Below, one piece after another: positions 1-64,000 of a stretch of DNA of 64,000 nucleotides. This DNA comes from Auanema rhodensis (lineage: Eukaryota; Animalia; Nematoda), in the NCBI GenBank assembly GCA_964057225.1, contig OZ059898.1:6324001-6388000 (forward strand), in the 5' to 3' direction. Within the stretch, counting starts at the first letter, position 1. Each line of letters begins with the position of its first letter. Made by a program: the position numbers and the translations under genes. The notes under the pieces are model-generated. The model saw only the letters and a list, made by a program, of their open reading frames with translations, was not told the origin of the DNA and did not search any database.

Positions 1-3000
1 CCAGGTAGTGGAACAACCACTTCTCTTGGAGATTCAGAATCTACGACAACTTCCAATGCTTCTGAAGTCTCAAATTCAAGCAGTGTCACAACCACTTCCC
101 CTAGAGCTTCAGAATCCACAAAATCTTCCGATGATTCCGAATTGTCGACTCCAAGCAGTGTCACAACCAGTTTGCCTGGAGCTTCAGAATCTGCAAAGCC
201 TTCTGATGAAACTAAAACAACCTTTCATCCAAAACATCTGAGTTTTTCGAGAGTTCCTGATGAAAAATCAACCACACCAACTGAGAACATCGTAACAGCC
301 ATATCCCACATGATTTCGAACGTTTTCTCGACTACTCCAAGTGCTCCAACAACACGAATGGAGGATGTTATGGGATTGGAGATCATGAATCCCAATAAGT
401 TTTCCCAAAATCCGAAATTCGTAGCGAAAACAACCACAGCTTCTGCCAAATCTGTCCTAGACTCTTCTACCCTTCCATCTTCTTCTGAAGTTTCAATTAC
501 TGAAGATTCTGGTGAAGAGCCGACTACTGTGATGGAGGATAAGATGGGCTTGGAAATTATGATTCCACGAAGACCAAATGTAAAATCAACCTTAGGGCCA
601 CAGCTTACTTCCTCTTCAGCAAATCCGAGCGATACTGTTTCTGCTTCATCTACTTCAGTAACTCCTGAAGGTGAAAGCACTGTCTCAGTTTCATCCGGCT
701 CATCAACTACTCCAGGTTCTGAATCTAATATTCCAACATCTACCGGAGCTTCAGTAACCCCTGGAGATGAAAGCCCTGTCTCAACTTCAACTGGAGCATC
801 AACTACTCCAGGTTCTGAATCTAATATTCCAACATCTACTGGAGCTTCAGTAACTCCTGGAGATGAAAGTACTGTCTCAACTTCAACTGTAACTTCAACC
901 AAGTCTGTTGTTGAAGCCTCGACTCCAACTTCTACTAGAGGTTCCGGAGAAGAGCTAACTACCGTAATGGAGGATAAGATGGGTTTGGAGATTATGAATC
1001 CACGAGGAACACAGGTGACATTCTCATCAAAACCGACATTCTCTGGTGATGTAGCATCCACTTCTTCTCCAACCGGAGTACAAACTACTGGAGATGCTGG
1101 AATCAGCTCATCATCACCACCTAGAGGTTCAACAGCTCCTGGTGATGTAGCATCTACTTCTTCTCCAACTGGAGTACAAACTACTGGAGATGCTGGAATC
1201 AGCTCATCATCACCACCTAGAGGTTCAACAGCTCCTGGTGATGTAGCATCCACTTCTTCTCCATCTGGAGTACAAACTACTGGAGATGCTGGAATCAGCT
1301 CATCATCACCACCTAGAGGTTCAACAGCTCCTGGTGATGTAGCATCCACTTCTTCTCCATCTGGAGTACAAACTACTGGAGATGCTGGAATCAGCTCATC
1401 ATCACCACCTAGAGGTTCAACAGCTCCTGGTGATGTAGCATCCACTTCTTCTCCAACCGGAGTACAAACTACTGGAGATGCTGGAATCAGCTCATCATCA
1501 CCACCTAGAGGTTCAACAGCTCCTGGTGATGTAGCATCCACTTCTTCTCCAACCGGAGTACAAACTACTGGAGATGCTGGAATCAGCTCATCATCACCAC
1601 CTAGAGGTTCAACAGCTCCTGGTGATGTAGCATCCACTTCTTCTCCAACCGGAGTACAAACTACTGGAGATGCTGGAATCAGCTCATCATTACCTAGAGG
1701 TTCAACAGCTCCTGGTGATGTAGCATCCACTTCTTCTCCATCTGGAGTACAAACTACTGGAGTTGCTGGAATCAGCTCATCATCATCACCTAGAGGTTCA
1801 ACAGCTCCTGGTGATGTAGCGTCCACTTCTTCTCCAACTGGAGTACAAACTACTGGAGATGCTGGAATCAGCTCATCATCACCACCTAGAGGTTCAACAG
1901 CTCCTGGTGATGTAGCATCCACTTCTTCTCCATCCGGAGTACAAACTACTGGAGATGCTGGAATCAGCTCATCATTACCTAGAGGTTCAACAGCTCCTGG
2001 TGATGTAGCATCCACTTCTTCTCCATCTGGAGTACAAACTACTGGAGATGCTGGAATCAGCTCATCATCATCACCTAGAGGTTCAACAGCTCCTGGTGAT
2101 GTAGCGTCCACTTCTTCTCCAACTGGAGTACAAACTACTGGAGATGCTGGCATCAGCTCATCATCAGCACCTAGAGGTTCAACAGCTCCTGGTGATGTAG
2201 CATCCACTTCTTCTCCATCTGGTGTTCAAACTACTCGAGATGCTGGAATCAGCTTGTCATCCCCTGGAGGTTCAACAGCTCCTGGTGATGTAGCATCCAC
2301 TTCTTCTCCATCTGGAGTACAAACTACTGGAGATGCTGGAATCAGCTCATCATCATCACCTAGAGGTTCAACAGCTCCTGGTGATGTAGCATCCACTTCT
2401 TCTCCAACCGGAGTACAAACTACTGGAGATGCTGGAATCAGCTCATCATCATCACCTAGAGGTTCAACAGCTCCTGGTGATGTAGCATCCACTTCTTCTC
2501 CATCTGGTGTTCAAACTACTCGAGATGCTGGAATCAGCTTGTCATCCCCTGGAGGTTCAACAGCTCCTGGTGATGTAGCATCCACTTCTTCTCCAACCGG
2601 AGTACAAACTACTGGAGATGCTGGCATCAGCTCATCATCAGCACCTAGAGGTTCAACAGCTCCTGGTGATGTAGCATCCACTTCTTCTCCATCTGGTGTT
2701 CAAACTACTCGAGATGCTGGAATCAGCTTGTCATCCCCTGGAGGTTCAACAGCTCCTGGTGATGTAGCATCCACTTCTTCTCCATCTGGAGTACAAACTA
2801 CTGGAGATGCTGGAATCAGCTCATCATCATCACCTAGAGGTTCAACAGCTCCTGGTGATGTAGCATCCACTTCTTCTCCAACCGGAGTACAAACTACTGG
2901 AGATGCTGGAATCAGCTCATCATCATCACCTAGAGGTTCAACAACTCCTGGTGATGTAGCATCCACTTCTTCTCCAACCGGAGTACAAACTACTGGAGAT

Positions 3001-6000
3001 GTTGGAATCAGCTCATCATCATCACCTAGAGGTTCAACAGCTCCTGGTGATGTAGCATCTACTTCTTCTCCAACTGGAGTACAAACTACTGGAGATGCTG
3101 GAATCAGCTCATCATCACCACCTAGAGGTTCAACAGCTCCTGGTGATGTAGCATCCACTTCTTCTCCAAACGGAGTACAAACTACTGGAGATGCTGGAAT
3201 CAGCTCATCATCACCACCTAGAGGTTCAACAGCTCCTGGTGATGTAGCATCCACTTCTTCTCCAACCGGAGTACAAACTACTGGAGATGCTGGAATCAGC
3301 TCATCATCACCACCTAGAGGTTCAACAGCTCCTGGTGATGTAGCATCCACTTCTTCTCCAACCGGAGTACAAACTACTGGAGATGCTGGAATCAGCTCAT
3401 CATCACCACCTAGAGGTTCAACAGCTCCTGGTGATGTAGCATCCACTTCTTCTCCAACCGGAGTACAAACTACTGGAGATGTTGGAATCAGCTCATCATC
3501 ATCACCTAGAGGTTCAACAGCTCCTGGTGATGTAGCATCCACTTCTTCTCCAACCGGAGTACAAACTACTGGAGATGCTGGAATCAGCTCATCATCACCA
3601 CCTAGAGGTTCAACAGCTCCTGGTGATGTAGCATCCACTTCTTCTCCAACCGGAGTACAAACTACTGGAGATGCTGGAATCAGCTCATCATCACCACCTA
3701 GAGGTTCAACAGCTCCTGGTGATGTAGCATCCACTTCTTCTCCAACCGGAGTACAAACTACTGGAGATGCTGGAATCAGCTCATCATCACCACCTAGAGG
3801 TTCAACAGCTCCTGGTGATGTAGCATCCACTTCTTCTCCAACCGGAGTACAAACTACTGGAGATGCTGGAATCAGCTCATCATCACCACCTAGAGGTTCA
3901 ACAGCTCCTGGTGATGTAGCATCCACTTCTTCTCCAACCGGAGTACAAACTACTGGAGATGCTGGAATCAGCTCATCATCACCACCTAGAGGTTCAACAG
4001 CTCCTGGTGATGTAGTGACTGGAGATGGTGGAATCACATCATCCACTGTATCAGAAAACACAACTAATACCCCTGTTATAGTTGAAAGTACGGTATCATC
4101 CAATTTTGTTGTCATTTCCTCTAAAACAATTAAAGAATTTGAAACAACAACAACACATGATGGTACAACTAATACTGATATGCCAGTTGAAGTTGATATT
4201 GTGCAACAAATTGTCACCAAGTCTGGAAGACAACCTGATAGCTTTACTGCAAGCCCTTCGTCTAAATTTAAAATGCTTTTCTTAACTCCTGATGACAGTG
4301 ATGAAACTGAAGATTCTTCTCAAGAACAATTAGTAAAAACCAGTACTCCATCATCCTCGTTATTCCTAAAAATTAGAAAAGATCAAACGCTTTCTGGAAA
4401 ATCAACATCAACTACAATGACAACTCAATCAAAATCATTCACAAAATCATCTTCAGAAACTCATCTAACAACAAGAAATTCTAAATCTGTATCAGATGTA
4501 ACAACAACCACGAAGCCAAGTAATGAAGAGAATGTAACGCCTTTCTTCCGAAGTACAATGGCTTCATCAAGTCAAGAACCAGAACCAATTGTTGAAATTA
4601 TGTGGCCAGACATTTTAGAAACGGATGTTGTACAAGATATTAGTGTACCAACACCAGGTACATCAGTTCCAACTCAAAAGCCTATCAAGACAGCAACCTC
4701 TTCAACTATATCTATTGAAACCAAAAATTCACATAAGCCAAAGGATTCAAAACATAAACCAATATCAACCGTTGCACCAAAATTACAAAAACCAATTACT
4801 TCAAAATCAAAATTACCAAATATTATAGAAACAACAAAAACTCATAAATTGGTAATTTCGAAAGAATATCCAACATCAACTATGTTTACGCCTTTTCCAA
4901 TTGATACTAGCTTTACCAACTATTTGTCACCGCTTTTCACAACTGCACAATCACATATTAATGATGACACTGAGAGCACCTCCACAACACTAGATCCTCT
5001 TGCAGAAGATAATCCATATTTTCCAGCTCATACTACTTCACCTTCTAGTGATATTGAAGTTCACAACAATGAGTTCCACCGTGGTTCTCCCAAGTTGCCA
5101 CACGGAAAGTAAGTTCTTTCTTAAATTCGTTTAAAATTCATATAATCTCTGTTTAGATGTTCTGAAGAAGATCGCAGCCAATGTCATGAATTTGCTATTT
5201 GCCAAGTTTCCACCGGAACTTGTAGATGTAAAAATGGCTTTGAGGGTAATGGATATAACTTCTGCCGGTATGTTGCTTTCTTCAGTTTTCTAAATTATTT
5301 TTTTTTGTTTTCAGGCGAGTTGATGCTGTTGACTGTGTCGCTAATTCGTCTATCTGTCATGCATCCGCTTCATGTGATCGTCATAGTCGTCGCTGTCAAT
5401 GTCCAGCAGGACATATCGGTGATGGCATTCTCTGTTCACCAGATCCACAAGACTGTTTGTTGCGTGAAGACTTATGTTCTCCTGATGCTATTTGCGTCGG
5501 AAGACGTTGTCAATGTGTTGAAGGATTTACTGGTGATGGAGTCAAATGTGTATCTCTTCATCAGCGATCGGCTAACTGCTCAGAATGTGATGTTAATGCT
5601 CAGTGTAATCATGGAGTTTGTGAATGCAATGTAAGTACAATAATCTTAAATATCAAATATAATATCATTATCTTCAGAATGGATATTTCGGAAACGGTTT
5701 ATGCTGTGTACCAGATCCACGTGATTGTATTCATTTCCCTGGAGTCTGTCATCCATCTGCTACTTGTAACAACCAAACCCGTCAATGTGCATGTGATGAA
5801 GGATATCTTGGTGATGGAATTCAATGCTTCCCTCGCTTATCCTGCCGCACTGATCCATCTGTCTGTCATCGTAATGCTTTATGCTTACCATCCGGTCAAT
5901 GTATGTGCCAACATGGTTATGAAGGAAATGGCCATCATTGTGAAAAAAGTAAGAAAAATCTTCATTAACTATAGTTAAATAATTTATTTTTAGTCTCATC

Positions 6001-7705
6001 ATTAGCTATGCGTAGACCACAAGCTCTTGATTCACCAAATGCTTGTAACAACAAGTGTGATTCATCTTCCGAGACATGCACAAACGGATCTTGTCAATGT
6101 AAAAACGGTTTTGAACGTAAATCGGATAACAAGTGTTACGGTATGTGTTGAATAATTAGAAATAAAATTTGAATTCAATTAATTTTCAGATATAAACGAA
6201 TGTACTGATAGATCCGTATGCCATCATCTTGCTACTTGTCACAATCAGCCAGGATCATACCGTTGTGAATGTCCAGAAGGATACGTTGGAGACGGAAAAA
6301 TCTGTGTACAACATCTTCGTGTTGGAGAACTTTCAGGTAACTATTTTTGGTTTTTATTTAACCAATTAAACAAAATATTTTAGTTTTCTGTGAACCTGAT
6401 GGCATGACATTGGTTCTTGGAAATGAAACAGAATTATTCGAAGGACGTATCTTTGTACGTGGACAAGCTGAAAATCCTCACTGTTCTAAGATGTTCTCAT
6501 CTCTTCAACAGAATGTTAAACCATATACATTCAAAGTACCATTCGAACATTGTAATGTACATCTTGAGAATCATGTAAGTTATTTATATTTATAACTAAT
6601 ATTCATATAATTAATATAAATTATTTTAGGATACATTTGCTACTACTGTTATTGTTCAAAAACATCCAATGTTCATAACAACATCAGCTGATGCTTATGA
6701 TCTGAAGTGTACTTATCCTGTTGGCGTACGTGAAGTTGAATCTCATGTCAACGTATCAGAACTAGCTGCAACATCTACGTTATCTGATAAAACAGAAGGA
6801 CCATTATGCAAGATCAGTGTAATGAATGAGAAAGATGAATCGATTAATGCTGCTACTGTTGGCGAATCGTTACGTCTCCGATTAGAAGTATCACCCAATC
6901 AAACATATTCCATTCTACCAAGAAACTGCTTTGCCATTAACATTGAAACTGGTGAACGATACTCTTTAACTGATAAGGCTGGTTGTGCTATTGATGATCA
7001 GCTCTTCCCAGAATGGATTAGAGTTCGACCATCAGTGACTGAAGCTGTTTTCAAGTAAGTTCCTTTAATATTTCAAATTTTATATAATTATTTCTTTTTT
7101 CTTTCAGAACATTTAAATGGCCCGATAGCTCTATTATTCGATTCCAATGTGACTGTAGTGCTTGCGTTGGTGATTGTCCAGCCGTTGATTGTGGACGTCG
7201 CCGTGAAGCTGCTATGCGAAGATTCCGTTTCCGTCGTGCTCACTCAAATAACGATACTGAAGTGATTGAAACCGAAAAAGATGAAGAAGAAGAAAATCTT
7301 GATGCACAAGTAGTAACATCTCAACAGATGGCTTTCTCTTCTCTTGTCCAAGTACATGAAGGCGATGAACAAGTTCGTGCTCAAGAACAAGTAGAACATT
7401 GGCGTCGTGGAAGTAAGTTATCGTTTATTATAATTAATTAATATTCATATATGTATATCTTTATTAATTTTATTAATTTTTAATTATTTTCAGGCCCATC
7501 AAATGGAGTTGTGATGAAATCAACAGCTACCTTATCTGAATCCGTCTGCGTACGAACTATTCTTATAGTATTATCTGCTCTTAGTTCAGCATTCTGTCTT
7601 GGTTTCCTTATTATTCTTCTCATACTCCGTTGTCGTCGCCGTGATTCTCAAATTCCCAAAGATATATTATCAACTGATTCTCCTATTTCCGTTATCAGTT
7701 ATTAG
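1..7705 (+). CDS. fbn-1: Fibrillin-like apical ECM protein FBN-1 (5'-partial): Ser/Thr mucin region, EGF repeats, ZP domain, furin site, TM
   Basis: Frame is open from base 1. Manual exons: <1-5108, 5157-5267, 5315-5630, 5678-5948, 5994-6140, 6190-6336, 6384-6574, 6630-7054, 7108-7412, 7494-7705, all GT-AG. EGFs include CQCVEGFTGDGVKC and calcium-type DINEC. The ZP domain (FCEPDGMTLVLGNET..FEGRIFVRGQAENPHC...ILPRNCFAINIETGERY...TFKWPDSSIIRFQCDC) closely matches C. elegans FBN-1 as I recall it. RRFRFRR precedes the TM helix. Confidence 0.9.
661..900 (+). repeat. Older degenerate 96-bp coding repeat (~2.5 copies; STTPGSESNIPTSTGASVTPGDES)
   Basis: CCAGGTTCTGAATCTAATATTCC occurs at 712 and 808. 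Confidence 0.85.
1045..4014 (+). repeat. Coding tandem repeat: ~31 copies of a 96-bp (32 aa) unit, GDVASTSSPTGVQTTGDAGISSSSPPRGSTAP, with five 93-bp variants
   Basis: GGTGATGTAG recurs at 1045, 1141, 1237 ... 3910, 4006. Shorter units start at 1621, 1906, 2191, 2476 and 2665. Confidence 0.97.
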
Positions 7706-8665
7706 AGTTTCTAATTTAAATTAATATCAAATAACTTTTATAATATCTGACAACTTATTCAACAAACTTGACAACTTCTCCTAAAACTTAGACAAACTAA
7801 TATTTTTAATGTTATCTCATTTTGTTACATAAGGGTATAGCTAGCTTAACTATTTTTTATTTCAAATATCTTGTCATTACAGTAATCTCCATGATCTTTA
7901 TAATTCTATTTTATGTGTCTTCAAAGAAATTTGTGTTAAAATTTAATAATTCTATATAATTTATATTATATAGTTAGAATAGTTATATTGTGCTTGATGT
8001 ATTTCCTATATTCGACTTGATTTCATTCCTATCAGAGTATATCTATGTTTTGATCTTTCCAATTACCGCCTGGATTGTGCACACTAGATATATCTGTACA
8101 TTGGTCTCGGCTGGAAGTTTGCCATTAACTATAATTTACTCAGTTTGCGAAGCCAATTTGTTATATTTGGGAATTTTTCTTGTAAATTTAACAATTTGAT
8201 TTGTTTCCTTTCTTGTTTTTGTTCTAAGATTGCTTTCCTAGAGAAACTTCCCAATTTCTGTTGTATTGCCTAATAAAAATAAATAATTAAAAAGATTTAT
8301 TGAATAATTTGAAGAATCACATGCAATAATAATACTTATAGCTATACCAAATACAGTATACGCATACGAGGGGGGGGGAGTGTGAGGTACTGTAATATAC
8401 CGTACTCCCGCATCGGATATCCATATTCATAAATTAAGATTAAGGATATTCAAAATAAAATTTATATAAAATTTAAAAAAATAAGAGAATAAGTAAAGAA
8501 AAATAAAAATATATTGATTATAATATTTATTAAATAATATACATTAATGAGAACAATTGAATAAAAAATCAAAATATTGATACAAACATTGATTCCAAGA
8601 AGCACAAACTAATGAAACTAATATTAATGAATATATGTAAATAAATTATATTATATGTATACAAA

Positions 8666-10975
8666 TTAAAATATAAAATTAGATGGATAAAACCATTTGA
8701 AGATATTTCTTGCAAATTTAAATTGTTTCTTCTTATCATTTATATTTTGATTATCAGACCATTTATTCCATTTATGTGTTATTGCTGGAAATCTAAAACA
8801 AACAAGAAAAAAGATTAAAATATAATAATTAATATATAAAATACCTCCAGATTGTTGGTTGACCATAATGTGGAACATCATGACGTAATGGAGATATATC
8901 CCAATTGAATATTGGTGTTGGATTATTAGTTGGACCTGATATAGCAGTGAATTCAAATGATTCAACTAATTTTGAATTAGTTGCCTAAATCAAATAAAAT
9001 TTGAATTAATCATATGAATATACATATATACGAATAGTTAAAAGAATTACCTTCATATCTGTTGCTCCCATATCTATAAAGCCTCTGTCAGCAATTGGAT
9101 ATGTTCCATTTGGATCATTCAGTTCACTTCGAGCAGCTATTGCGCTTTCAGCTGAATACGGTGGATTGCATTCCGGACAACGTGAAAATTTGTCAGTTTT
9201 ATAGTTATTTGATCTCATTAATTGTATTAAAGTCCACATATCAACAACAAAATGATGATCTCTTCTGAATATATTTGCTCTTGGAGCATGATCATAACTA
9301 AAAAAAAAGTTTTTCTTTTCAAAACAGTAATCAAACTTTACCTATACCAATCACCAAATTCTTTTTGCATTTTAGCTGAACCACTTATTTTAAAAATATC
9401 TTGGAAATATCTGAAAAGAATAAGTTTAAAATATTAAAACAAAGTTTAACTAAAACTAACGGTCTGTTATAACTTGGCCAATAAGTTGTTTCAAATAATT
9501 GATGAGTTTTATCGTTTTGAACAATCATTCCTCTAAATAATAATTATGTTTTATTAATTATACGTATATAATTAAACTAACGGCATTTGTTCTAAAACAT
9601 ATAAAAGACCTAATGATTGAGTTTTTTCTCCTTTTTGAAATAATTTATAGTCTAATATGACAAATTGATTATTATATGTTCCACTATTATGCTTAGAAAA
9701 TGTTTTTGCCCAGAATGAGCCGTTTCCAGCAACACGAGTAGCAACCTAATATAATTATTTTGTAAAAAATAATTGATTAACAAATAAAAAACCTGAGTTC
9801 TCATAAACGTTGGTACACTTTCTGGGATCATTAATTTGTATAATTTTTCATCATGTACTTCTATTGTTGTTTCAAATATTGCCAATTTAGCCGAATTAAT
9901 TAGAAAATCATCAATAGAATTTACAGTTCCTAATATTAAAAAAAATAAATTTGTTATTCTTTTATAATATTTTTACCTGGATATCCACTAAAGCTGTATG
10001 TATGTCCTGGTTCCATGGTATGAAATGAGAATTTCTTTTGAATTCTTAACATACTTGAGTAAGTAAACCATGTTACATGTGAGAATAAAATATCAGAATA
10101 ATCAGGTAAAATCTTAATTTTTTTAAATAAAAATATAAAAATATTAATGTTAAACCTTAACAATAGCTGAACAATGTGTTCTACTTGTCTTAATTGGTCC
10201 ATCGTTCTTGCCAAACTTTTTCTCTAAATCCATAAAATCTCCAAGCCATTGTAATAAACTAAACAAAAACAAAGATAGATAAATATAAAATAAATATAAT
10301 TATACTAAATTGGATGAGAAACAATCTTTTCAACAGGTAAATTACGTCGTCTGGTTCCATCATAAGCATCCATAAGTCCATGAATTTGATTTAATGTTAA
10401 ATTAACCTTTAAATATAATAATTATATTTTTTTTTAAATTTAAATTACTTGTTGCCAATATGAATCAGAATGTTTCTCAATTTGATTTTTCATCCAAATA
10501 TAATTTTTTTGCAAGTGTTTTGCTAATCTTGCACAATACACACTGTTTCCTTTGCAATATGGATCAATCATATTTTGGATATGAAGTTTGATTAAGTTTC
10601 GAGTTGCATGTCCTTCAGCATATCCGGCATAATATCCTTGATCAGCTAAACTCATAGAATTTTCAATAATCTTTACATCCAGATATGCCCATCTATAAGT
10701 ATTTTAATTTAAAATATATAAATAATTATAATAAATTAACCCTGTTTTATTAATTTCATTATTATATGAAAGTTTAACTTTAGGCTTTTCACATGAATCT
10801 TCTTTCATATAATCAATAATTGATATATGATCATCATCCTTATTTACTGATTCACATAAAAGAATCTGAATCTTATTTATAATTTATTATTAAAATTTTA
10901 TAAAAAACTTACATTTTTTTCACAAAAAACATTTGAAATTATATAAAATAGCAGAAAGAATAATATTTTCTGCAT
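8666..10975 (-). CDS. Phospholipase B-like protein (PLBD1/PLBD2 family, Ntn-hydrolase), many short exons
   Basis: ATG at 10975 starts a signal peptide (MQKILFFLLFYIISNVFC). Motifs: GWAYLD, QGYYAGYAEG, HCSAIVK/ILPDYSDILFSHVTW (catalytic Cys after autocleavage), SFSGYPG, HNSGTYNNQ, LMRSNNYKTDKFSRCPECNPPYSAESAIAARSELN, GATDMK, AISGPT, HHGQP. Stop at 8666-8668. The terminal exon choice is less certain. Confidence 0.88.
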
Positions 10976-11761
10976 TTTTCTTTAAGACGGTCACTAGATG
11001 GTCAGTTCTGGATTGATATGATGTGATAATAAAAAGAAATAAAATGATAAAATGATAAAAATATAGATATGAAACATTATAAAATAAATAAATACATCAT
11101 CTTATCAATTGTAATCACAAAAACAATTGATTTTATAAGAAAAATAGAACAAAATTTTCAAGAAATAACTATTGAGAAGCTTTTGCTAAGAAATTATTTA
11201 AGATTCATGATATTGAAAGAATTTTCTTTTCATTTGAAATAAGTATTGTGTTGTTTATTATCGGTTAAAATACTTTTAGTATTACACAAACACCTTGACC
11301 TTTGTTCATATGATTGTAGTCTGGTCAACATGTTGAAAATTTTCTTTTTTTCTTCCGAAATATTTGAAAAGATAAAGCTTGAATAGAAACTTTATTAAAA
11401 CATATTGTATATTAAATTATAATATAATTATATATTATTATCATATAATTAATATAAAAACATGAATATCTATCTATCTATAGTATATTTCAGTATTTTT
11501 TATAAATAATTATGTAAATTTATAATAAATATTATAAATGAATTATAATATAATTATAATTTATTTTTCAGCTTATCTACACATATAAAAGAAATTCACG
11601 AAATTCCTCGTTAATTTCTTTTTATAGAGCGGCTTTGTTATTAAACAAACTTTTTATTTTATTTCTTCGCGATCTTGTATCTGAAATCAATTATAACAAC
11701 AAGGACGATATAGCAAAGTATTAAGAGACAGAGAGACACAAAAAAACGAAAAAAGAGGCAT

Positions 11762-24600: not shown

Positions 24601-27138
24601 ATACATCTTTCTTAGATTTTCTTGTAAGGATCATCAATATGATTATTAGAATATTCTTTTGGAATGAACAAAAATGTGTTTTCGGACAAGCAACCGAAGA
24701 CACTTTTACAGATTTGAATGAGATGATGACGTTCTACCAGTTTTCATATCAGCTTTTTCCGATCTTCTATTCGATCCCTCCGATAGTTTTTGTATCACTT
24801 TTGTATATTAACTATATGTATACTTATATTATATATTATATAAATATACTATATATGAGACATTAACTTAACTATATCATATATTTAATTACTATAAACA
24901 TAACTTACATATAGTTAGTTATTTATATGTATTTTTCATGAACATTCATGTACATACATATATGTACATCTATAGTTTCTTTGTGATGATTTGGAAACTA
25001 ATTATTTCTAGAAATTTATGGAACGATTGTAGAAAAGACAAGTAGTCATCTAAGGGAAAAGCCGTAACTATACGGTAGAAACGAAGAGAGGTGTTCTTGT
25101 ACCCTTTTTAACTGCTTCCCTTCTCTCTCTCTCTCTCTCTCAAGTCCCCCTCCCTTTCTCTCTCAAGTCTCCCTCCCTCTCTCTCTCTCTCTTTATCCCC
25201 CACCCCTCTCTCCTTCTATGACATTCATTATCTATCTATCTAGTTATATTTACTCGATTATGTGCTCTCAATCGTATTCTCTCTATTTATCTCTTTTTCT
25301 TTTTTTTCTTTCCTTATCCTTAACTACCAGCTGTTTTTGACATTTTTATTCATTTTTTCTCTTCTTCTCTCACCTCGATTTTCATCTCTCTTCAAATCCA
25401 TCCTCATTTATTCCCTCTTTCGTTTTCTTTTTTTCTTTTCATCATACCATCCCTCTCTCTTTCTTACTCTCACTATTTCAGTCAACATCTTTTCTCTTTT
25501 ACTATTATTTCCAGTTTTGTTAGCTAAGATATATTCTTATATAGTTTGCCATCAACATAGACGACAGACATTTTCGTCAAAAGCTAATTTGGTTTTCATG
25601 TGTATAACCCTTTTCGAGTAGTACAGTGTGACTGTCTGGTCCTACAACTACAATCTTCCTCTACTCTTATATCGTCATCTGCTACTTCTGCTTTTGCCCT
25701 TCTTCATCATCCAATCTTATTACTTTAGCCAACCAAGTCGAAGTTGATTCATAAATAGAACTGTATAAAGTATGAAGAAACAAACAGAAAGCTTTTATCT
25801 ATTCAGCTCATCTTCCCACCCCCTCTCCTTCCTATTTCCTCTCTCTTAATCTTTTTCTCTCTTTATATATATCTCTCTATCTTTTCCTTTTTTAACTATT
25901 ATCTTCATAGTTACTTTCTATAAATCTATCTCTTTATATTCTATTTCTCTTATTCTCTTACATTGTGTTTATATTTCACAAACATATTACTTCATCTATT
26001 CATAATTATTTTTTTCTTTTCAACTCTCATCCCTTGTGCTAACTGTTTCATCTACTTCTATACTTCTTCTCTTATTCCATCACTACATTCACTTCTATCC
26101 TTATTTCTTATTTGGACAACGGAATGCCAAAACGATTTCCAGTTCTTTTGCCATCGGGCTGGCTTTGCAAAAGCGAATCTGAGTGGGCTTTCATACATGT
26201 TCAAGCAACGGTCTCAATTTCGGTAGCTCCTCCTTCATCTTTTACTCCTTTTGTTTTTCAAATTCAATTTTATTTGTTTTTTTCAAATATTTTGAATGTA
26301 AATATATAAAGTTTCAATAATTTTTTTTATGAAAGATGCAGAGAGATGCATGCATAGCTTACTGCTTATACGATTTTTTTTCCTAAAAACAAACATTTAC
26401 ATTGATATTTATTTTATTTTAATTTCTTATTTTCTTATAAAAAATATTTATATGTATATATATTCAGAAAAAAATAATAAATTTTCTTGCTTACATCCTT
26501 AACAGCCTTATCTTATGTTCGCATCCCTCAGCACAGTGTAATGTACCGGTTTGTACCATCTTCAAACTATAGTTAAAATCTTTTTTTTTTTTTTTTTCAT
26601 TTTTGAAATCATTTTTATCATAATTTATAATTTAAACAACAAACTATATTAAATATAATTTATATTAAAATCTAATATACATATGTATATACATAAATAC
26701 ATATATGTATATATATATGGAAATATGATAAGCAAATTCCATAACAATCTTGCTTACTTACATCTCTTTATCAAATAATTAATGTTTATTACTTATATGT
26801 ATATATGAATATTAATTATAATCAATATATTTTAAATTGGTAATCAAACTCTTCTTCTTCATTTTCATTTCTCTTTTTCTCTCATTTTCTGATTATATTC
26901 TTCTTCTGATTGATTATTTTTCTGTTATCAGAATATTTCCATAGGTGATTTGATAACTTGCTCGTTTTTAATTTCTTCAATCACATAAAAATCATTTTAT
27001 TTTCAATTTCATTACAAAATGCATATTTTTCCATTTATTTTCTTAAATTTTTTAGTATTTTATTCCTTAGTTCTATGTAATTTATTTATTTCTATTCTAT
27101 TATTTAACTATAATTTGATTTTTATTTATTTTCATCTT

Positions 27139-27145
27139 ATTTCAG
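27139..27145 (+). promoter_or_regulatory. Probable SL trans-splice (or 5'UTR intron) acceptor of the BED gene
   Basis: ATTTCAG lies 3 nt before the ATG, after a long U-rich outron-like stretch. Confidence 0.55.
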
Positions 27146-27148
27146 CTC

Positions 27149-30100
27149 ATGAGCTCACTGGTCAGCGGAAACAGTATTTTGCACATAGCTAACCGATTGA
27201 GCGATCTCAAGAAAGAGACGCCAACATCGGATGAAGATGAGAATTCTTCTCATTTTCTATCAAGTTTTAGCTCATCATCTCCAGTTGATTTGATGGATGA
27301 TGTTACTAAGCCATCAGAAGATATTGACGACGAAACAGAAGATAATGAAGAGGATGATATGATCAGAGAAACATCAACTCCACCAACAGAGCAGATGAAC
27401 GGTAAAACTTTTCGTTATCTCTAACTATAGTAAAGAAAAGCTTGACCAATGCATATTTCTACGTACAAGAATTTTTTTTTCTTTTCAACACAAAAAATAG
27501 CAAATAATCCTTTTTGCTGATATCATATTGCCAAAAGAAATTATAAAAGTAGATATATAGCACAGGGAAACAGTTTAAAGAGTGTGAGAGATTGTAAGAT
27601 AGGGTATAGTGTACTAGAACCTATCCGCTTATGAAGTTCTTATGCTTTAATAGTTTTAAAAATATTTTGTATGTTAAATTAAGTTGTGAAGCTTAAAGCA
27701 ACCACTTAGTTTCTATCAAGAAGTCCTCCAATTTTTTTGTCAATTCAGTTTGAATTTTGGACATAAGCAGACAATAGAAAATCTCGTTTCAACTAGGGGG
27801 CCGATGAGGACGTTTACATCGAAAAACCTCATTCTTTCAAATTATTCAAGTTTAGTTGAAGCTTAAAGTACAAAATTGCTCTATATGTTGGTTATAATAA
27901 AGCTTCCGGCTTTTTCACTTTGATTTAGAATTCTTCAATTATTTTATAATTTTTTTTCAAAAAAAAAAAAAAAAAAAAGCTTCTAATCTGAATCATAATA
28001 AAATTTTTTTTTGCTGCAGACAACTTTAAAAGCTTTTTTTTTTTAAAGTAACACACATACATATGTATGTGAGTGAGTGCGCGTGAATATGTGTATGTGT
28101 GTACATGTGTCCATCTGGGTTATAAGATAATTTTGATATTTCTAGCTGACTAGACTACCATCTTTTTTAATTTTTATGTTCATATTTTTATGATATCACT
28201 GTAAAATTATGTGATTATGTGAAAATATTTAATTTTGAAATAAATTTATAATCATCATTACCACCTATCTATTTAATCATATTTTTTTGTTTTAGCTGAT
28301 ATGGAATCTGAATCATGTGTCTTAAATTCAAATGAAATTTCAAGCGATAATGATGTTAAGCTTAGCTTTTCCATGTTTTTAGATAAAATTACAGTAAGTT
28401 ATTTGTATATTTTTGAATATTTTATCTATTAAATATGAATTTTTAGCATCCACCATCACCATCTACTTCTACTAATCACAGCACAGATTCAATTCCTTCT
28501 CCAAATTTGGATTTACAATCAGCCGTTGCTCAGATGCAACAGCAGATTCTAGCTAGTCAGGTAGTGCTTCTTGAACTTTTTGAACTTCAACACGTTTTGG
28601 AAACTATTTAATTTGAAAAATAATTTCAGTCAATAATGAATAAGCAATGCGATGAAAATAATGGACATAATGTCTCACCAGGCTTAGGAGTTGAGCAAAT
28701 GGTAACAATGAGAGGTAAGCATTCACTTTTCTCTCTATCTCCTTCTCTCTCTTTCACTTTCTTTCCCTCCTTCTATTTCTCTCTTTATCTCCTTCTCTAT
28801 CTCACTCCCTCTCTCTTTCTCTCTCTCTTTCTCTCTCTTTTTCCTATTCTCTCTTTTAATTATTTATCTTCATCTTCATACTTACATTCACACCTTTTCT
28901 ATACTGAAATCTGGATTCTACCATATTAACGGATTAAAGTTTTAGATCTATTGCCTGGATATTCTCCTTGGCTTAGAAATGCAGGAAGAAAGAAGTCTCA
29001 TCCGGTCTGGGAATTTTTCAAAGATTTGAAAGATACAAGTAATTCCTTCAATACATTTCAAATACAATATTATTTTTTTAAAGAAAATTTACAATCTGAT
29101 GGAGCTGGAGGAGTAGTTTGTCTTCATTGTCCATGGACAGGAGATGATAGAAGCCCAAATAATTTACGGACACATCTGAAAAAGTTTCATTCAGCTGATG
29201 GCATTTTTGCTCAGTTCAGTCAGAAGTTAGCACAAGTAAGTTATTGAACTGAGTGAAGAATTCGGGAGAAAAGTTCAAAATAAATATAATTTTTTACAAA
29301 ATTTGGAGAAAAAAATGCTGAATATGAATTATTGAATGAGTTCAAAATAAGGTCTAGGACATATACACACATGTGTGTGTGTATGTATGTGTGTGCATGT
29401 GTCTGTGTGTATTTTTAAAAGAAAATAATACATCAAACATCATTGACTGCTTATACTTCATCATATACTCATGTTGAAGACTACTGTTAGATTGTATATT
29501 CATGCTATCGAATATGGATGCCTAGAGGGGCAATCACTGGTTCCCGTGGATACGAAATCTCTTTTGAGCTTTTCCCTAATCTTTATATTTCTCTCACCCT
29601 ACCTTGCACCGTCGATTTTTCTCACTCACTCTCTCTCTCTCTCTCTCTTTCTTTCTCTCTTTCTCTCTCTTTCTAACTTCTTCTATATAAGTATAATCCA
29701 TGGATAACTATATATAGATATATATATATAGTTTTTAATCAAATGTTTTTGAAATATTATAATTAAAATACAAAAATGATTTTTTCATAAAAATATATTA
29801 AAATAGAAAAGTAGAAGTAGAATTAAACAACAAATCAATTCTTCTTTTTTTTCTTTTCTTCATTCTTTATAATTAAATAATATCGTTAAATCATTATAAA
29901 TTATAATAAGTTTTACTGAAAGCTTGTTTCGTTTCTCATCGTCGTACATATCTTAAATCAGTCTCGTTTTATTTCTTTCGACTTCTTCTTTGAATATACC
30001 AAATGAACTCCTATTTCTTCCCTTTTGCATTAACGCCCCCCCCCCCCGTTTTTCATTCCCAAACCCCTATATGTCAATTCTCCCCCCCCCCGTGTGTTGA

Positions 30101-30999
30101 TTTTGATAAATACCATAATGTGTCGTCAACAGACCCAGCGGGGAGGACCTAAGGGTCCGTCCTTGAGCCTTGTATCTTCTAATACTGACTTCGTTCTAGC
30201 AACTCCTCTCATTATTTCTCATTTTCTCTCTGTCTCGTTTATTTCTATTATCTTTCATATTTATGATCTAGTTCGATGTATGTAATCTTTTTCGGCCGTT
30301 TCAACTCAACTCGACCAGTCAGTCACCCCTCCCTTTTCCCCCGTCTCCTCCACTCCCGCTTCGTCCCCCTCTAACTCCCCCCCCCCCCGTTCTTCTCATA
30401 GTTCAACCACCAATTCGCCCCCCTCCCCTTTTATGTGTACCTCTTCTCTCCCCCGTATGTATGTTCATAGGACCCGCAGAACGAATTGAACTACCGATAG
30501 AAGCAAGCAGAGAGTGAAACACAGACATCTGAACAGAAAAAGGAACAAAGATAAATCGAGAGAGAGGGAGAGAGAGAGAGAGAGAGAAGCGATGATGAGA
30601 TGGTCCAATACATAGACAACTGGACGAAGAACGTCTAATGTCTTCGGCCGTTTGTGTCTCTTCTCCTCCTTGAACGACGCGCTGACGATAGGGGCTATTC
30701 GCTGTCGTTAGGCCGACACTCGTCCCACACCCCCGTCAGACGCTTTCTCCTATTTTTTTCCTTCACAAAACCTCTTTTGGTTCCTTTTATTGAAAGCATA
30801 TTTCTATAACTTATTATCATAAATTTAAATTAATTTTCTAATAAGTATTGTATAATATAAATATTTTTATATATATTATCATTTATCTATATTTACGTTT
30901 TAGAAATGTATCATCATTCTCCTCATCTGTTCATTGTCATATGAAGGAAACACATACGACAAAGACTTGAAGACGGGTACCAGAGCTGGTCTCCATTCC

Positions 31000-31033
<34 letters not shown>

Positions 31034-34000
31034 TTTTTCTTCTTGTTGTCTTTCATTCTGCAATAGCGTTCCTTTATTTCGTTTCACATCTATCTCCTCC
31101 TCGTTCTTTTCCTACTACTTCTCAACCACCACCAAAACCTTGCCTTTCCCTCCCCCCCCGCTACATCATCTCTTCTAGTTCATCCATTACCATAGTCAAT
31201 CTTCATTTTGCTTCTCTTCTTTTACTCCAAGCCCTCCTTTCACGTACTTCTAGAAACTCTTCTATTTCTGAATTCTTACATCATCTTCTTACTCTAATAC
31301 CCATTTCTTCTATTCAAGGTTTGAGTCATAGCTTATGTTTAAAGAATTTAAACTCTTCGAAATCAGCTAATTATATGTTTTTTTCGAATTTAATTTGATT
31401 TTCTTTGTACCATTTGAAATATGTCAATGATATTAACTTACTTTTCTTCATACCATGATCATTCCAACTTTACTCCCAAGGTCTTCTCAATATTAGCTGA
31501 ACAAGTTGACATACAGACGATCGGACAGACTCCCCTACTATACTTTTCTCACCCCTCCACTCACACCCTCTCTTTCTCTTACTCTCTCTCTTTCTCTCTA
31601 CTTCTTTTTCTATATCTCTCCTCATATCGCTATCTCAGTTCCTCTATTTCTCCCTCTCTATGCCTTTTTCGATCTCTTATACTATTTTCAGTCCATTTAC
31701 TTTGACATTATCTGGGTTTCTTCGGTCCTTCAGAAAGCTTGATTTTTGCTAAGAACGATTATAGTGAAAACAAAGAATTCTGTAAAGCAACTAAATAAAA
31801 ATTACGTTAAGCATGGTATAAGATTAGATCAGTAGAGACTTTTCCTACTCTTCAGACTCAGATATAGCACCTTCTGGAGCTCATTTCAGACTGGTGTGGT
31901 AAAGATGAGGAAACGGTGAAAAAACGAAGATGATGAACAGAATAAGAATGTCTCTTCTTCTTCGCTTTCTTCGCTCTTCCCTCGCTTTTTCATATTCGCG
32001 ATGTTCTCATCTCTTCGTATGCTTCGTGGTGATGACGGTGTGAGAGGAAAGAAGGGGGGAGAGGTGGCTGAGAGGGGAGGGCGAAATAGGGGGGGGGGGT
32101 TTGTGTGTGCTGTGTGCGGACCCCGTCTATCGATTCGTGGGGTTGTTTCCAGTCTCCCTCCCTTTCTCTCCTTCTCTCTCACATCCCCTTTTGCTATCTT
32201 CAACATCCCCCCGTTTGGTTGTCTATCTGACTGTCTGATGTCTCCTTATTCAAATAATGACTATGCCCCGTTCAGTCTTCTATACTCTCTAACCGGGTCC
32301 TTATTCTCTGCCGTTTCGTCCCGTCTACGTAGGTGACGTCGTCGTAGTCGTCGTCGTCGTCACGTCTTGTCCTTCTACTAGCAGCAGCACGAAGACGAAG
32401 TCAACTAATGCTTCATTTACTATATGATTACCAATAGCCATGATCAGCAAGACTGTGTTCTAAAACTATTTCATTTTTCATTGTATTGTCTCGCTTCATT
32501 GAATTAACTTTGAGAATTTCCTCGAATTCTAAAGAGAAATGGAAAAAAAATTAATCTGTCTGGAAAGTTATATTTAAACATATAATATATATTATACATT
32601 TCATATTATTATATTATTTTCACACTGTAATTTTTTTTTATTTCAATTTCTTAGAAATTCATTTATTTATTTTGAAAATGACTATACAAACTTTTGTATA
32701 TATCAAAGCTTTTTAATCATTTTCACATAAAGTTTTTGGACATTTACTACGTATTTCTCTGAATTCTAATTGATGAAACGGTTTTAGACAATTGTTTCCA
32801 TCTGAAACCGTCTTTTATCACTTTTCTTTCTTTTTTATTCTTTTTTATGTATGTGTATATACTATACTATATAAATGTATTTATATACATAGTTCTTGTC
32901 CACTTTCCTTTCCTACATTTCAACTTCCTCAGTTTTGCTTCTCTCTCTTTCCCTTTGTCTTTTTATCTCTCTCTATCTCTTTTTCTCTTTCTCTCTATGT
33001 CTGGCTTTCCATGAATCTTTCTAATATTCTATATGAAGGTGGTGTAAAGCTTTTGTACTTCTTCAACAACTTGCGTATTCCATTTATTAGATTTTTCTAA
33101 ATTATTAGTGCTCTTTTTGCCTCATAAGCATTTCTTATTTCATACGTATTTATTATTTTTCTTGTCAGCTCGAAACTTTATTCTTTGGTTTTCTTGAAAG
33201 CAACAAAAAAAATTTTTTTTTCTACAGCTTATCCAAATATCCTGCATATTGGAGTGAAAATATTGTGAAAAATATACAGAACTTCACATCCATCTCTAAT
33301 AATGGAAGTGGTTTCTGTCAATTCCGAAGAAGCATTGAACTCTCTTATCATCGCTGATGCCTTCCATGCATTAGCTGGAGCTAGCACATCGTCAGCATCA
33401 ACCTCACAACAACCAAAAGCAATGCTGAAATCACAGAAGACGAATAAGAAATCATCTGAAATTTGGGATCACTATCGTCTTCTCTCTGAAGCTCAGAATG
33501 TAGAGTGTGTGCATTGCTGGCGAGTCCTTAAACGAGCCGATAGCTCCACCAAGAGTATGTGGGGCCATATGAATGCTTTTCATCAGGACCAGCTAGCAGA
33601 AACAAACAGTCGAAAGAAGAGAAGAATATTATCTATTGTCAAAGATGAGGTCCGACATACTGATAGTTCAGCCTTTTTTTACTCAATTTCAATCATAATT
33701 TCAATCAGACAGCATTACAAAATTGTTGTTTGTTGTTATGAAAAAAAAAACAATTTTATTTTCAAAATTTAAAAGAAAAACTTTTTTTCTTTTTTTTTTA
33801 AATCACACATATCGTTTTTCAGACTCCCACTCAGCCATATGTAAAACGGGCGCGTGCTGGAGCAAGTCAGCAGCAGCAACAACAGCAACATCAGCAGCAG
33901 AATCATAGTACAACATCGTCATCTCAGCCAACATCCCAGGCTGATGATGTTGCTATGGTAATACAACAACTTCAGAATGCTGCAAACAGTAGTAACTCAA

Positions 34001-34869
34001 TTAAGCCTGTAAGTTTATTATTATTATATGTTTAATCATTGAAAAACTATTTTTTTAATTTTTCAGATTACAACTAGTCCATTCAATTTTCTTGACAACT
34101 TACCAAAGTCCAATGAAGTCATTAATATCTCTGCTGGTTTTGGGAAAGGTGACGACGAAGAAGAGAGTGTAGAGAATACGAATGAGGTACGAATTCTTGT
34201 TGATGACCTTTCTTTAACTTTTCGTTTGTTTTAAGCCTGGTTCATCTGGAGCATCAGCATCGGGAGAAAGAGCTGTATCTGATTCGCCAATAGAAGAAAC
34301 AAGTGGAGGAAGTCCTTCAGTTTCATCAACGAATCAACTGAATGCCTTCATGAATATGGCTACTAATCCTTTAGTATGGAATGCAATGCTGTAAGTTTAC
34401 AATTTCTGTCGTCAAAAACTTTATTTTATTATTATTACAGTGCAAACTCATCACATGGTTCAGCATTTTCATTAAATGATGGACAATGTGTATCAATGCT
34501 AATGAAAATGGCTTTAGATTTGGATTTAACTATGTCATATCATAAACGAAGGTAATCTTAATGAATAAACAAATAAAAAAATATATTTTTATTTATTTTA
34601 GAGGTGAAATTGAGTTATGCTTTGAAAGTAATAGAACAGCTGAAAAGTCGGGCGGACGCGGAAAAATTTTATGTTTAAGTGATATGCAGAGAGAAATTAG
34701 GTAAATTCTATACATAAACATTATATTTATATAATAATATATTTATTTTAGGGTAACAGAGCGTGTTAATGGTGCTCCTACAGATACAGAATTATGGACA
34801 AAAACAGATTTTAACCAATTTCATTGGGCCATTCGTGGTAAATGTCAAAAGGTTTTAGTTCGAGCATAA
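27149..34869 (+). CDS. BED zinc-finger protein, long isoform (BED-1), with acidic N-terminus, polyQ tract and globular C-terminal domain
   Basis: TTTCAG-CTC-ATG start. Exons: 27149-27401, 28296-28393, 28447-28560, 28630-28714, 28946-29235 (possibly split by intron 29039-29083), 33823-34008, 34067-34186, 34236-34390, 34441-34551, 34602-34700, 34752-34869, all phases compatible. BED: SHPVWEFF...CLHC...SPNNLRTHLKKFH. No transposase catalytic domain follows. Confidence 0.82.
33302..33649 (+). CDS. Second, alternative BED-finger exon (BED-2) inside the 4.6-kb intron of the BED gene
   Basis: ATG at 33302. Sequence KKSSEIWDHYRLL...VECVHCWRVLKRADSSTKSMWGHMNAFH followed by basic NLS-like RKKRR. Phase-0 donor GAG|GTCCGA at 33649/33650 is compatible with the phase-0 acceptor at 33823. 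Confidence 0.75.
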
Positions 34870-37064
34870 CCTTATTATCTAGTAAATAATCGCAAAATGT
34901 CTTTCATAAATAAGAAATATTGGCCGTTCCTTACTTGTTAAACATTTTGAAAAACTACTACTTCCCTATTAAAATCTCAGATATTGCCTTCATTCGTTTA
35001 TTCTTTCTCACAATGTTTCTTCTTTTTTTTCTTCTTTTCTTCAATTTAATTAACAAAATTATTTTTTATTTCATATTTTTGATTTAAATAATTTTTTATT
35101 TTTCTTCAAACATCGTCTATCATCATATCATTATTCAAAAAGCCAATCAATTCATTTATTTCTCATAACACTGTATACACCTAATCACATAACCTCCAAG
35201 GTAGAATCATCTATTTTATGATTATTTTGCTTTTTGAAACAAATTTTTTGATCGTCTAGACATGAACTTATGATGTTTATTTTGTTTTTTTCTTTATTAT
35301 TATCTAAGTGATGAAGACGGCAACGGTCCAAGCTTCTAGTAGCTCTCGTATAGCTTTCGTTTTCGGGTATCTCGCCATCATTTTGACCTTTTGGAATTTT
35401 TCACCATTTGATATATATATTTTATTAATATATACATATATGTATATATTATTACAATATAATAAATAATGAAATAATTCATAAATAATCAAGTGATATC
35501 AGAATAATGTGTCATTCAAATCCATTTTGCTTATAGTAAGAGCTATATTTCACTGTTTCATTCATTTTGGCTGAAAACCTATCATCATCATTATCATTAC
35601 CACCCTCAATTTGTGTGTCTATTTTGCCTTCTGAAAGTGCCTTGTTTCATGATTCTCTGAAAACTTTTAAAAATTGTTTTATTTTTGATGAAAATCATCA
35701 AACCTTTTGATAAGTTTTCGGTTGTAATCTCATGAACATCTAAAAAATTTTGTTTCTCTGATCAAAAACCTTATACTCTAGATATCTCAAATGATTACAT
35801 TCTTATAATATATATATATATATATATATTGGTTATATTGTTTATATTTTTAATTATTATTCTATTTTTTTTTTAAAATTAAACATAAAATATAAACAAT
35901 ATACATGTATATCTATGTATATTATGAGAATGTATGATGTATTATTTACTTTCAATATCTTACTATCTTTGTTTTTGAACATTGAAATCTATCTTTCACT
36001 CAATAGAATATAATCTCTGATAACTTTTATAATTATGTTGACATACATACATATATCAATTTGAAAATCATATAATTATTTTTCTTTTACTTAATAGTTT
36101 TTTGAATATGATTACTGCCAATGACTTAAATAGATCTTCCATATGATTATTACTATATATATATAGTTATGTTCTTAATATAAAACTATATGAATATAGT
36201 TTAAAAACATTTTTTTATATAATTATTTGTTTTATTTAAATAATGAGCATAACATATATAGGTAATATCTTATTCCATTGTATAGTTAATAAATTCTTAA
36301 TCACTCACCTTATCTATACTTACATCTGATACATTTCAATTCATCTAATACATTAACTATACATATAATATTATATGTATAGTTAAATGAATATTCAAAT
36401 AATTCTTCATATATTTGTTTTTTTTTGTCTCAAAAATATTTCTAAAAATTACTCAGTTCCAATAATATGCATATATCATGTACATCTCATATATCGTGTA
36501 TATCCCATTTTCTTTCTAATTTCTTTGATATAATCTTAACACCCGGTGTGTTCGAACTTCGTTATTAACATGTCTATGAAAAATTGTTTTTTTATTGTTT
36601 ATAATGTCAACAACAACAACAACAACAATATGTAATATAATAAAATTAATATATTTATTCTTATTTGTAATTTTAAAAAAAAGATTTATCGTAAATCTGC
36701 CAAGTACACATTATATGATATAGTAATAACAAAATACATAACTTATAATATTTAATATAATATCTCTATAAATGCCTAAAATACTTTAATTCATCTCATG
36801 TAATTGTTAGTTTTTTCAAAAAAAAATTGATCTCATCATATTGTTTTAGAATTTGTTTTGAAAATTATAAGTATAAAAGAATATTTAATATAATATAAAA
36901 TTTTATTTTTGACATTATTATGAAACAAAAAAAAACCAAAATGCTTATACAAAACAGTAACAAAACACAAAATTATGAATTATAAACAAACAAAAAACGA
37001 GACCATTTCATTCAAATGTAATATGATACATTATTATAATTAATAATTTATATATTTTCTTAAT

Positions 37065-62108: not shown

Positions 62109-64000
<1,892 letters not shown>

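Follow-up and report, generated by a model that had tools for sequence, protein, structure and literature searches.

A stretch of 64,000 nucleotides (nt) from the nematode Auanema rhodensis (contig OZ059898.1, positions 6,324,001 to 6,388,000), hereafter called the window, contains a locus that sequence comparison identifies as the ortholog of the Caenorhabditis elegans gene bed-2, a transcription-factor gene of the BED-type zinc-finger class that places one of two BED fingers on a common C-terminus. In all likelihood the A. rhodensis locus makes two main proteins, in which different fingers (BED-1 or BED-2) stand on the same C-terminal part of ~260 residues, through a combination of promoter choice and skipping of the BED-2 exon. 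A preliminary description made from the letters of the window had proposed such isoforms, with one or the other finger on a common polyglutamine (polyQ) and globular C-terminus, and the proposal is supported by isoform pairs in orthologous genes and by a spliced RNA contig of C. elegans.

Two BED fingers and one shared acceptor

The two fingers lie ~4 kb apart on the forward strand, to which all gene coordinates given below refer. BED-1 is encoded by two exons: BED-1a (28946-29038) takes one base from the phase-1 donor at 28714 and supplies the first half of the finger with the motif R-N-A-G-R-K-K-S-H-P-V-W-E-F-F, and BED-1b (29084-29235) supplies the second half with C-x2-C ... H-x4-H and ends at the phase-0 donor GTAAGT at 29236. 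BED-2 occupies a single exon (33302-33649) of 116 codons with its own ATG at 33302, a conserved N-terminal motif, the finger and a basic tail, which ends at the phase-0 donor GTCCGA at 33650; an in-frame TGA at 33266 lies 36 nt upstream of this ATG. Both phase-0 donors (29235 and 33649) fit the same acceptor, TTTTTCAG at 33822, behind which shared exon C1 (33823-34008) starts in phase 0 with T-P-T-Q-P-Y-V-K-R and continues into polyQ. The coordinates and phases of the preliminary description all hold on re-reading the sequence, including the two divergent CCHH fingers, the fit of both donors to the 33823 acceptor, and the BED-2 start codon with its upstream stop. Its borders for BED-1 (28946-29235) were right as well; however, BED-1 had been read as one piece, and an intron at 29039-29083 was overlooked.

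This small intron is easily missed, because it is 45 nt long, a multiple of 3, and open in frame. The residues that it would encode are absent from the orthologs, and the match in T. colubriformis begins only at residue 48 of the unspliced translation. In Auanema sp. JU1783, the acceptor of the corresponding intron (ACAG; L007 ~10968-11035) lies 15 nt further downstream, at a place where the window has TG/CTG; because this downstream AG has become TG in the window, the AAAG at 29083 is taken as the usable acceptor. Compared with JU1783, the shift of the acceptor adds ~5 residues to the loop between W-x-F-F and C-x2-C.

In translation, the zinc ligands of both fingers follow the pattern C-x2-C ... 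H-x3-5-H behind an aromatic W/F motif. The BED-2 exon matches the Pfam family zf-BED (PF02892) with 32.8 bits (cut-off 20.6 bits; E 6.8e-8) over the full profile (1-44), and its orthologs score 26.8-38.2 bits. BED-1 remains below the same cut-off, with 13 bits for the unspliced window exon and 13.5-17 bits (profile positions 2-43/44) for the spliced BED-1 of orthologs; its translation carries the W-x-F-F, C-x2-C, H-x4-H signature and aligns with BED-2 at 32-33% identity over ~50 residues. Relative to JU1783 (locus L007), the nearest relative present in the databases, the proportion of synonymous differences (pS) is saturated at about 0.68-0.78, whereas that of nonsynonymous differences (pN) is ~0.03 in both fingers (0.028 versus a pS of 0.68 in the second half of BED-1). 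Because pN stays this low despite saturated synonymous sites, the conservation of the fingers is more than chance, and on this comparison both are under strong purifying selection. Similarly, all 30 residues of BED-1a are identical to the JU1783 protein P0156, 80-97% to Caenorhabditis, strongylid, and Pristionchus proteins, and 69% to Steinernema, and coding conservation of BED-2 with JU1783 sets in at the ATG, with hardly any change over the initial 24 residues.

BED fingers are common in hAT transposases, and the zf-BED match of the BED-2 exon would also be expected if BED-2 were a decaying hAT-type transposon fragment that happened to lie in an intron, an outcome that the preliminary description had named as one that would overturn its proposal. 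A search of the genome for copy number (181 Mb, 112 contigs) found BED-2 as a single copy; strongylids, Caenorhabditis, and Auanema all keep an ortholog of it at the corresponding place, with 53-81% identity to the window exon; the ratio of nonsynonymous to synonymous substitution rates (dN/dS) is ~0.02; and Pfam scans of the exons and of whole orthologs found neither a transposase (RNase-H-like core) nor an hATC domain. The transposon relic is thus refuted by conservation and copy number, and its probability is close to nil. For BED-1, the only other match in the genome is a distant paralogous one at G000:C1:8513872-8514054 (L003 1525-1683; 36% identity over 63 residues, E 3e-7), presumably another BED-finger gene.

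Orthologs and their isoforms

The assignment to bed-2 is based on collinear similarity to the C. elegans BED-2 products across both fingers and the C-terminal domain. Window exon by window exon, identity to the C. elegans proteins amounts to 80-82% in BED-1, 67% in BED-2, and 58-82% in shared exons C4-C6, and the C. elegans gene and its annotated orthologs in C. briggsae, Steinernema hermaphroditum, Pristionchus, and JU1783 correspond exon by exon, with an N-terminal motif, a two-exon BED-1, several kb of intron, a BED-2 exon that brings its own Met, the T-P-T-Q-P-Y-V-K-R exon, and the C-terminal domain. The window exons were searched singly, and database orthologs (P0156, P0009, and others) served wherever a whole protein was needed. 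A length-limited word search with the BED-2 exon yielded strongylid fragments only, the alignment of which entered a large profile search; a C. bovis protein obtained from the latter (P0011) was used in a second word search, in which the matches bear the names CBN-BED-2 and Ppa-bed-2 and include the C. elegans chromosome III products NP_001362179.1 and NP_001362180.1 and the older NP_499474.1. The gene WBGene00012943 is named bed-2 in the literature (PMC10802606). The closest protein is P0156 of Auanema sp. JU1783 (498 residues), which is 100% identical to the window in exons C3-C6. Genes of the bed-2 type occur in nematodes of clades III to V, and the protein relatives found for the locus are all from nematodes; the window DNA itself is AT-rich. 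The top match of the profile search, P0007, is a protein of 3242 residues with 32 separate BED-2-like stretches (E 3e-128).

The returned proteins were sorted into classes by the window exons that they contain. Both single-finger isoforms are annotated within one gene in three species: in C. elegans as NP_001362179.1 (542 residues, BED-1 only; P0168) and NP_001362180.1 (473 residues, BED-2 only; P0149), in C. briggsae QX1410 (L3Y34_001104) as proteins of 572 residues (BED-1 only) and 488/498 residues (BED-2 only), and in S. hermaphroditum (QR680_015224) as proteins of 565 residues (BED-1 only; P0144) and 460 residues (BED-2 only; P0019). Beyond P0168 and P0144, the BED-1-only class comprises C. 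briggsae P0154 and P0173, JU1783 P0156, Parelaphostrongylus P0157, and three Pristionchus species (P0158-P0160). In these models, the end of BED-1 runs directly into the T-P-T-Q-P-Y-V-K-R exon, as the counterpart of the 29235-33823 junction of the window, except in Steinernema P0144, where BED-1 is joined one exon earlier to a shared exon starting with DVVTAETF. The T-P-T-Q-P-Y-V-K-R motif is invariant in eight aligned BED-1-only proteins and represents the majority residue at each place in the BED-2-only set. The BED-2-only class has a homologous Met start and includes C. elegans P0149, C. briggsae, C. nigoni, C. remanei, C. angaria, C. japonica, and C. auriculariae, along with more than ten strongylids, Mesorhabditis, and Steinernema P0019; altogether, models starting at the BED-2 Met come from more than 20 species. 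More distant BED-2-type proteins are found in Ditylenchus, Rhabditophanes, Parastrongyloides, Thelazia, Acanthocheilonema, and Gnathostoma. The two-finger design is conserved across clades IV and V and may have been in place before these clades separated. In JU1783, the public annotation holds the BED-1 isoform only and misses an intact, conserved BED-2 exon that sits in the intron and has its own ATG (L007 13959-14321; 81% identical to the window).

The counterpart of the junction proposed for the long isoform was also found in RNA of C. elegans. In the spliced contig L009 (SRR14076780), BED-1 (L008 4974-5114) is followed directly by the shared exon (7711-7998), and the BED-2 exon, with its start at 7065, is passed over. 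Logan contigs of C. elegans, when searched for spliced-leader sequence, gave none; of these, L010 and L011 are genomic, and the 5' end of L009 is inverted. Contig L009 also bears on the notion that the locus comprises two separate genes, an upstream one ending with BED-1 and a downstream one made of BED-2 and the C-terminus, such that BED-1 is never joined to the shared exons. The annotations of C. nigoni (B9Z55_009876/009877) and N. brasiliensis (Q1695_014067/014068) are split in this manner; however, the upstream model of N. brasiliensis extends into non-conserved read-through sequence, the BED-1 exon of the window has no stop and ends at a consensus GTAAGT donor in the very phase needed by the shared acceptor, and BED-1 is linked to the shared exon both in L009 and in models of eight further species. 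As a result, two separate genes are a very unlikely account of the locus.

Proposed promoter choice and exon skipping, and the alternatives

The interval between the fingers (29236-33227, ~4 kb) is the intron of the BED-1 isoform and the presumed promoter and outron of the BED-2 isoform. An interval stands at the same position in other species, with 4.4 kb in T. colubriformis, 2.8 kb in JU1783, and 1.9 kb in C. elegans. The best acceptor before BED-2 is that at 33227, a T-run followed by CTACAG, which is conserved in JU1783 together with the first bases behind it; it would open the putative 5' untranslated region of the BED-2 isoform (33228-33301), which includes the in-frame TGA at 33266. These 74 nt between acceptor and ATG contain stops and have diverged from JU1783 with indels. 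In C. elegans, the acceptor is placed immediately before the BED-2 ATG, and an in-frame stop is found just upstream, which together give the usual look of a trans-spliced 5' end. Two non-coding blocks within the interval (~30266-30312 and 32119-32163) are 94-95% identical to JU1783 despite the saturated synonymous sites, are collinear in both species, and precede the BED-2 acceptor by ~3.0 and 1.1 kb; the second occurs only once in the genome. Both blocks are candidates for elements of the promoter or of an enhancer that serves the BED-2 isoform. An Rfam scan of 26500-35500, both blocks included, gave no match, and neither block was found when sought in C. elegans and T. colubriformis.

Most likely, an internal promoter serves the short isoform, whose RNA is probably trans-spliced at 33228, and the long isoform skips the BED-2 exon. 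For the long isoform, transcription would start upstream of 27149, and the RNA would contain exons 1-4 and the two BED-1 exons, of which the phase-0 donor at 29235 would be spliced to 33823 so that the BED-2 exon is skipped. For the short isoform, transcription would start within the 4-kb interval, and the RNA would be processed at the 33227/8 acceptor, most likely by spliced-leader trans-splicing, with translation from the ATG at 33302 and splicing of the BED-2 exon from 33649 to 33823. The choice of finger would accordingly amount to promoter choice plus exon skipping, in that RNA initiated at the upstream promoter gives a full protein only when the BED-2 exon is left out.

A single promoter would be sufficient if the two fingers were mutually exclusive internal exons, as the preliminary description had also considered, with the phase-1 donor at 28714 spliced to 33374/5 and BED-2 replacing BED-1 behind the same N-terminus. 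The phases do fit, with one base carried over and an open frame to 33649, but the 33375 acceptor matches only 3 of the 7 consensus positions and is lost in JU1783, which has TTAA instead of TTAG. Moreover, the swap would delete the conserved first 24 residues of BED-2, and no ortholog model has the N-terminus of exons 1-4 directly before BED-2. This part of the preliminary description has therefore been abandoned, and an exon swap is regarded as highly improbable.

A tandem product would carry BED-1 and BED-2 in series, by cis-splicing of the BED-1 donor into the BED-2 exon at the phase-0 acceptor 33437, for which the phase arithmetic works. This acceptor agrees with the consensus at only 4 of 7 positions, lies behind a poor T tract, and reads CAA rather than CAG in JU1783, and its use would remove the conserved N-terminal motif of BED-2. 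At the upstream acceptors, the join from BED-1 is not open, as had been claimed and as translation by hand in the respective frames bears out: splicing to the strong and conserved 33228 acceptor allows 9 codons before a stop, and at 33280 the frame does not match. Because BED-1 joined to 33228 or 33280 meets stop codons, a tandem protein is, as far as the sequence goes, essentially excluded in this species, and BED-1 and BED-2 in series through 33437 are very improbable. The A. rhodensis locus differs in this respect from C. elegans bed-2, in which the BED-2 acceptor lies at the ATG and in frame with BED-1, so that a tandem form is formally possible, whereas the A. rhodensis gene has the 74-nt stop-containing leader; its linker is also short, and the long Ser/Pro insert of Caenorhabditis is absent. 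Models of the tandem class exist as retired entries of C. elegans and C. briggsae and in C. brenneri, C. sp. 36, C. bovis, Cylicocyclus, A. cantonensis, and Haemonchus, all of them old or automated annotations, and several (P0008, P0142, P0150, P0177) contain clearly non-conserved, junk-like bridging sequence. In the current C. elegans record, the longest product has 542 residues and the old tandem model of 761 residues is gone.

Several considerations weigh against the proposal of two single-finger proteins made by promoter choice and exon skipping. Many of the ortholog models are automated, partly copied from one another, and hence not independent; for this reason, the spliced C. elegans contig and the multi-isoform annotations weigh most. 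For A. rhodensis, every junction is inferred from sequence and orthology, and the internal promoter, the spliced-leader trans-splicing, the finger-specific DNA recognition, and the interaction role of the C-terminal part are likewise putative. The tandem annotations of C. bovis, C. brenneri, C. sp. 36, and Cylicocyclus nassatus and the old C. elegans and C. briggsae entries count on the same side, and given such annotations, a tandem isoform may be made in species with an in-frame BED-2 acceptor. In the window, the weak phase-0 acceptors 33437 (4/7) and 33587 (5/7 of TTTTCAG) could give rise to minor extra forms.

The latter acceptor (TTTTCATCAG, window 33577-33592) is in phase 0 and stands directly behind the last zinc-binding His of BED-2, where it coincides with the start of the shared part in the isoforms of Steinernema hermaphroditum; if the BED-1 donor used it, the BED-1 isoform would gain the basic tail of the BED-2 exon. 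Its AG is absent from JU1783, and because of this absence the 33587 acceptor is probably due to chance.

Remaining exons, the C-terminal part, and related systems

Upstream of BED-1, the long isoform begins with exon 1 (27149-27401), which has its ATG at 27149, an acceptor-like TTATTTCAG 4 nt upstream of it, a conserved N-terminal motif, and a phase-1 donor; its first 29 residues share 93% identity with the beginning of P0156 and resemble the N-termini of the C. elegans, Haemonchus, and C. bovis BED-2 proteins. Exon 2 (28296-28393) was located by tblastn with residues 69-95 of P0156; it is acidic with the motif FSMF.DKI, is entered in phase 1 and left in phase 0, and is bordered by TTTTAG and GTAAGT. 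Exon 3 (28447-28560) is rich in Ser, Pro, and Thr and continues with AQMQQQ, and exon 4 (28630-28714) ends at the phase-1 donor GTAAGC at 28715. Downstream of C1, the shared part continues with C2 (34067-34186), containing the motif NFL..LPKS.EVINI; C3 (34236-34390), which is 100% identical to P0156 and has a GTAAGT donor; C4 (34441-34551), likewise 100% identical to P0156, in which the globular C-terminal domain begins; C5 (34602-34700), containing the core ELCFESNRTAEKSGGRGK; and C6 (34752-34872), which ends in a TAA stop. Each of the ten acceptors of the gene model matches the consensus TTTTCAG at no fewer than 5 of 7 positions. In practical terms, the genome gains a corrected model of the gene, with two isoforms, an extra small intron, and an extra upstream exon.

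The shared part of ~260 residues consists of the basic motif, the polyQ tract, an acidic and serine-rich linker, and an alpha/beta domain of ~100 residues. In an AlphaFold2 (AF2) model computed for P0009, the ortholog from Ancylostoma, with an alignment of 18 relatives, the polyQ tract and the acidic linker are disordered, and the last ~100 residues reach a predicted local distance difference test score (pLDDT) of 80-96 and are arranged as a helix, five strands, and a C-terminal helix in an alpha/beta sandwich. Pfam scans of each shared exon and of whole orthologs matched zf-BED only, and profiles of both isoform classes, searched against the sequences of the PDB, gave no relatives. With the same model, Foldseek returned the FP domain of Fbxo7 as its best match (E 0.02), which is not decisive, and VIA-align returned the Med17 C-terminal domain (Z 8.1) as well as frataxin-like folds and the FP domain (Z 6-8), all in the background range. 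A role of the C-terminal domain in protein interaction may be guessed.

The lola and mod(mdg4) genes have a constant N-terminal BTB domain and dozens of variable C-terminal C2H2 or FLYWCH exons, partly joined by inter-strand trans-splicing. The comparison with these genes drawn in the preliminary description is apt insofar as, in each case, a single locus offers alternative zinc-finger exons next to a constant part, but it is loose: here, the variants are two in number and N-terminal, and a BTB domain was not found in the Pfam scans. The closest analogue and precise precedent is instead BEAF-32A/B of Drosophila, one gene whose two proteins are alike except for ~80 N-terminal residues, which in each protein hold a single and different BED finger; alternative promoters are presumed, and the fingers bind different DNA (PMC5021357). 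As in BEAF-32, the two BED fingers of bed-2 are N-terminal alternatives to each other and precede a C-terminal part common to both proteins, as gene structure and ortholog isoforms indicate and as would hold for A. rhodensis as well. Unlike in BEAF-32, Pfam scans of the exons and whole orthologs found no BESS domain or leucine zipper, and the AF2 model has the alpha/beta domain of ~100 residues in their place; outside the BED fingers, no sequence relationship to BEAF-32 is detectable, and the BED-1 isoform of bed-2 has ~170 extra N-terminal residues. Because BESS and leucine zipper are missing and similarity is confined to the fingers, membership in the BEAF-32 family fails. The BED-type CCHH finger (PF02892) is likewise shared with the nematode proteins of dpy-20 and bed-3 and with ZBED or hAT-derived genes, from the last of which the locus differs in that neither a transposase nor an hATC domain was found by Pfam.

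By analogy, bed-2 might be the counterpart of BEAF-32 in function too, such that the isoforms would associate through the C-terminal alpha/beta domain, read two sets of motifs or composite sites, and act as an architectural or promoter-proximal factor, with the stop-containing leader making the choice of finger strictly exclusive; this extension is speculative and rather unlikely as a whole. The isoform pair is already present in public gene models of C. elegans, C. briggsae, and Steinernema and is not new as a fact. At the same time, a full-text literature search found no paper that discusses the pair, and bed-2 was met only in a list of differentially expressed genes activated by DMD-3. A transcription factor that swaps its DNA-reading module and keeps its effector part constant could drive two target programmes from one gene, and in the proposed model the switch lies in the choice of promoter and is readily tested. 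C. elegans bed-2 is tractable for isoform-specific knock-outs and for the mapping of binding sites, thereby offering a natural comparison with BEAF-32A/B.

Elsewhere in the window, a very long open reading frame of Ser/Thr/Pro-rich tandem repeats occupies 142-5112 on the forward strand, and an open reading frame at 62420-62920 on the reverse strand resembles, by eye, a fragment of 4-hydroxyphenylpyruvate dioxygenase.

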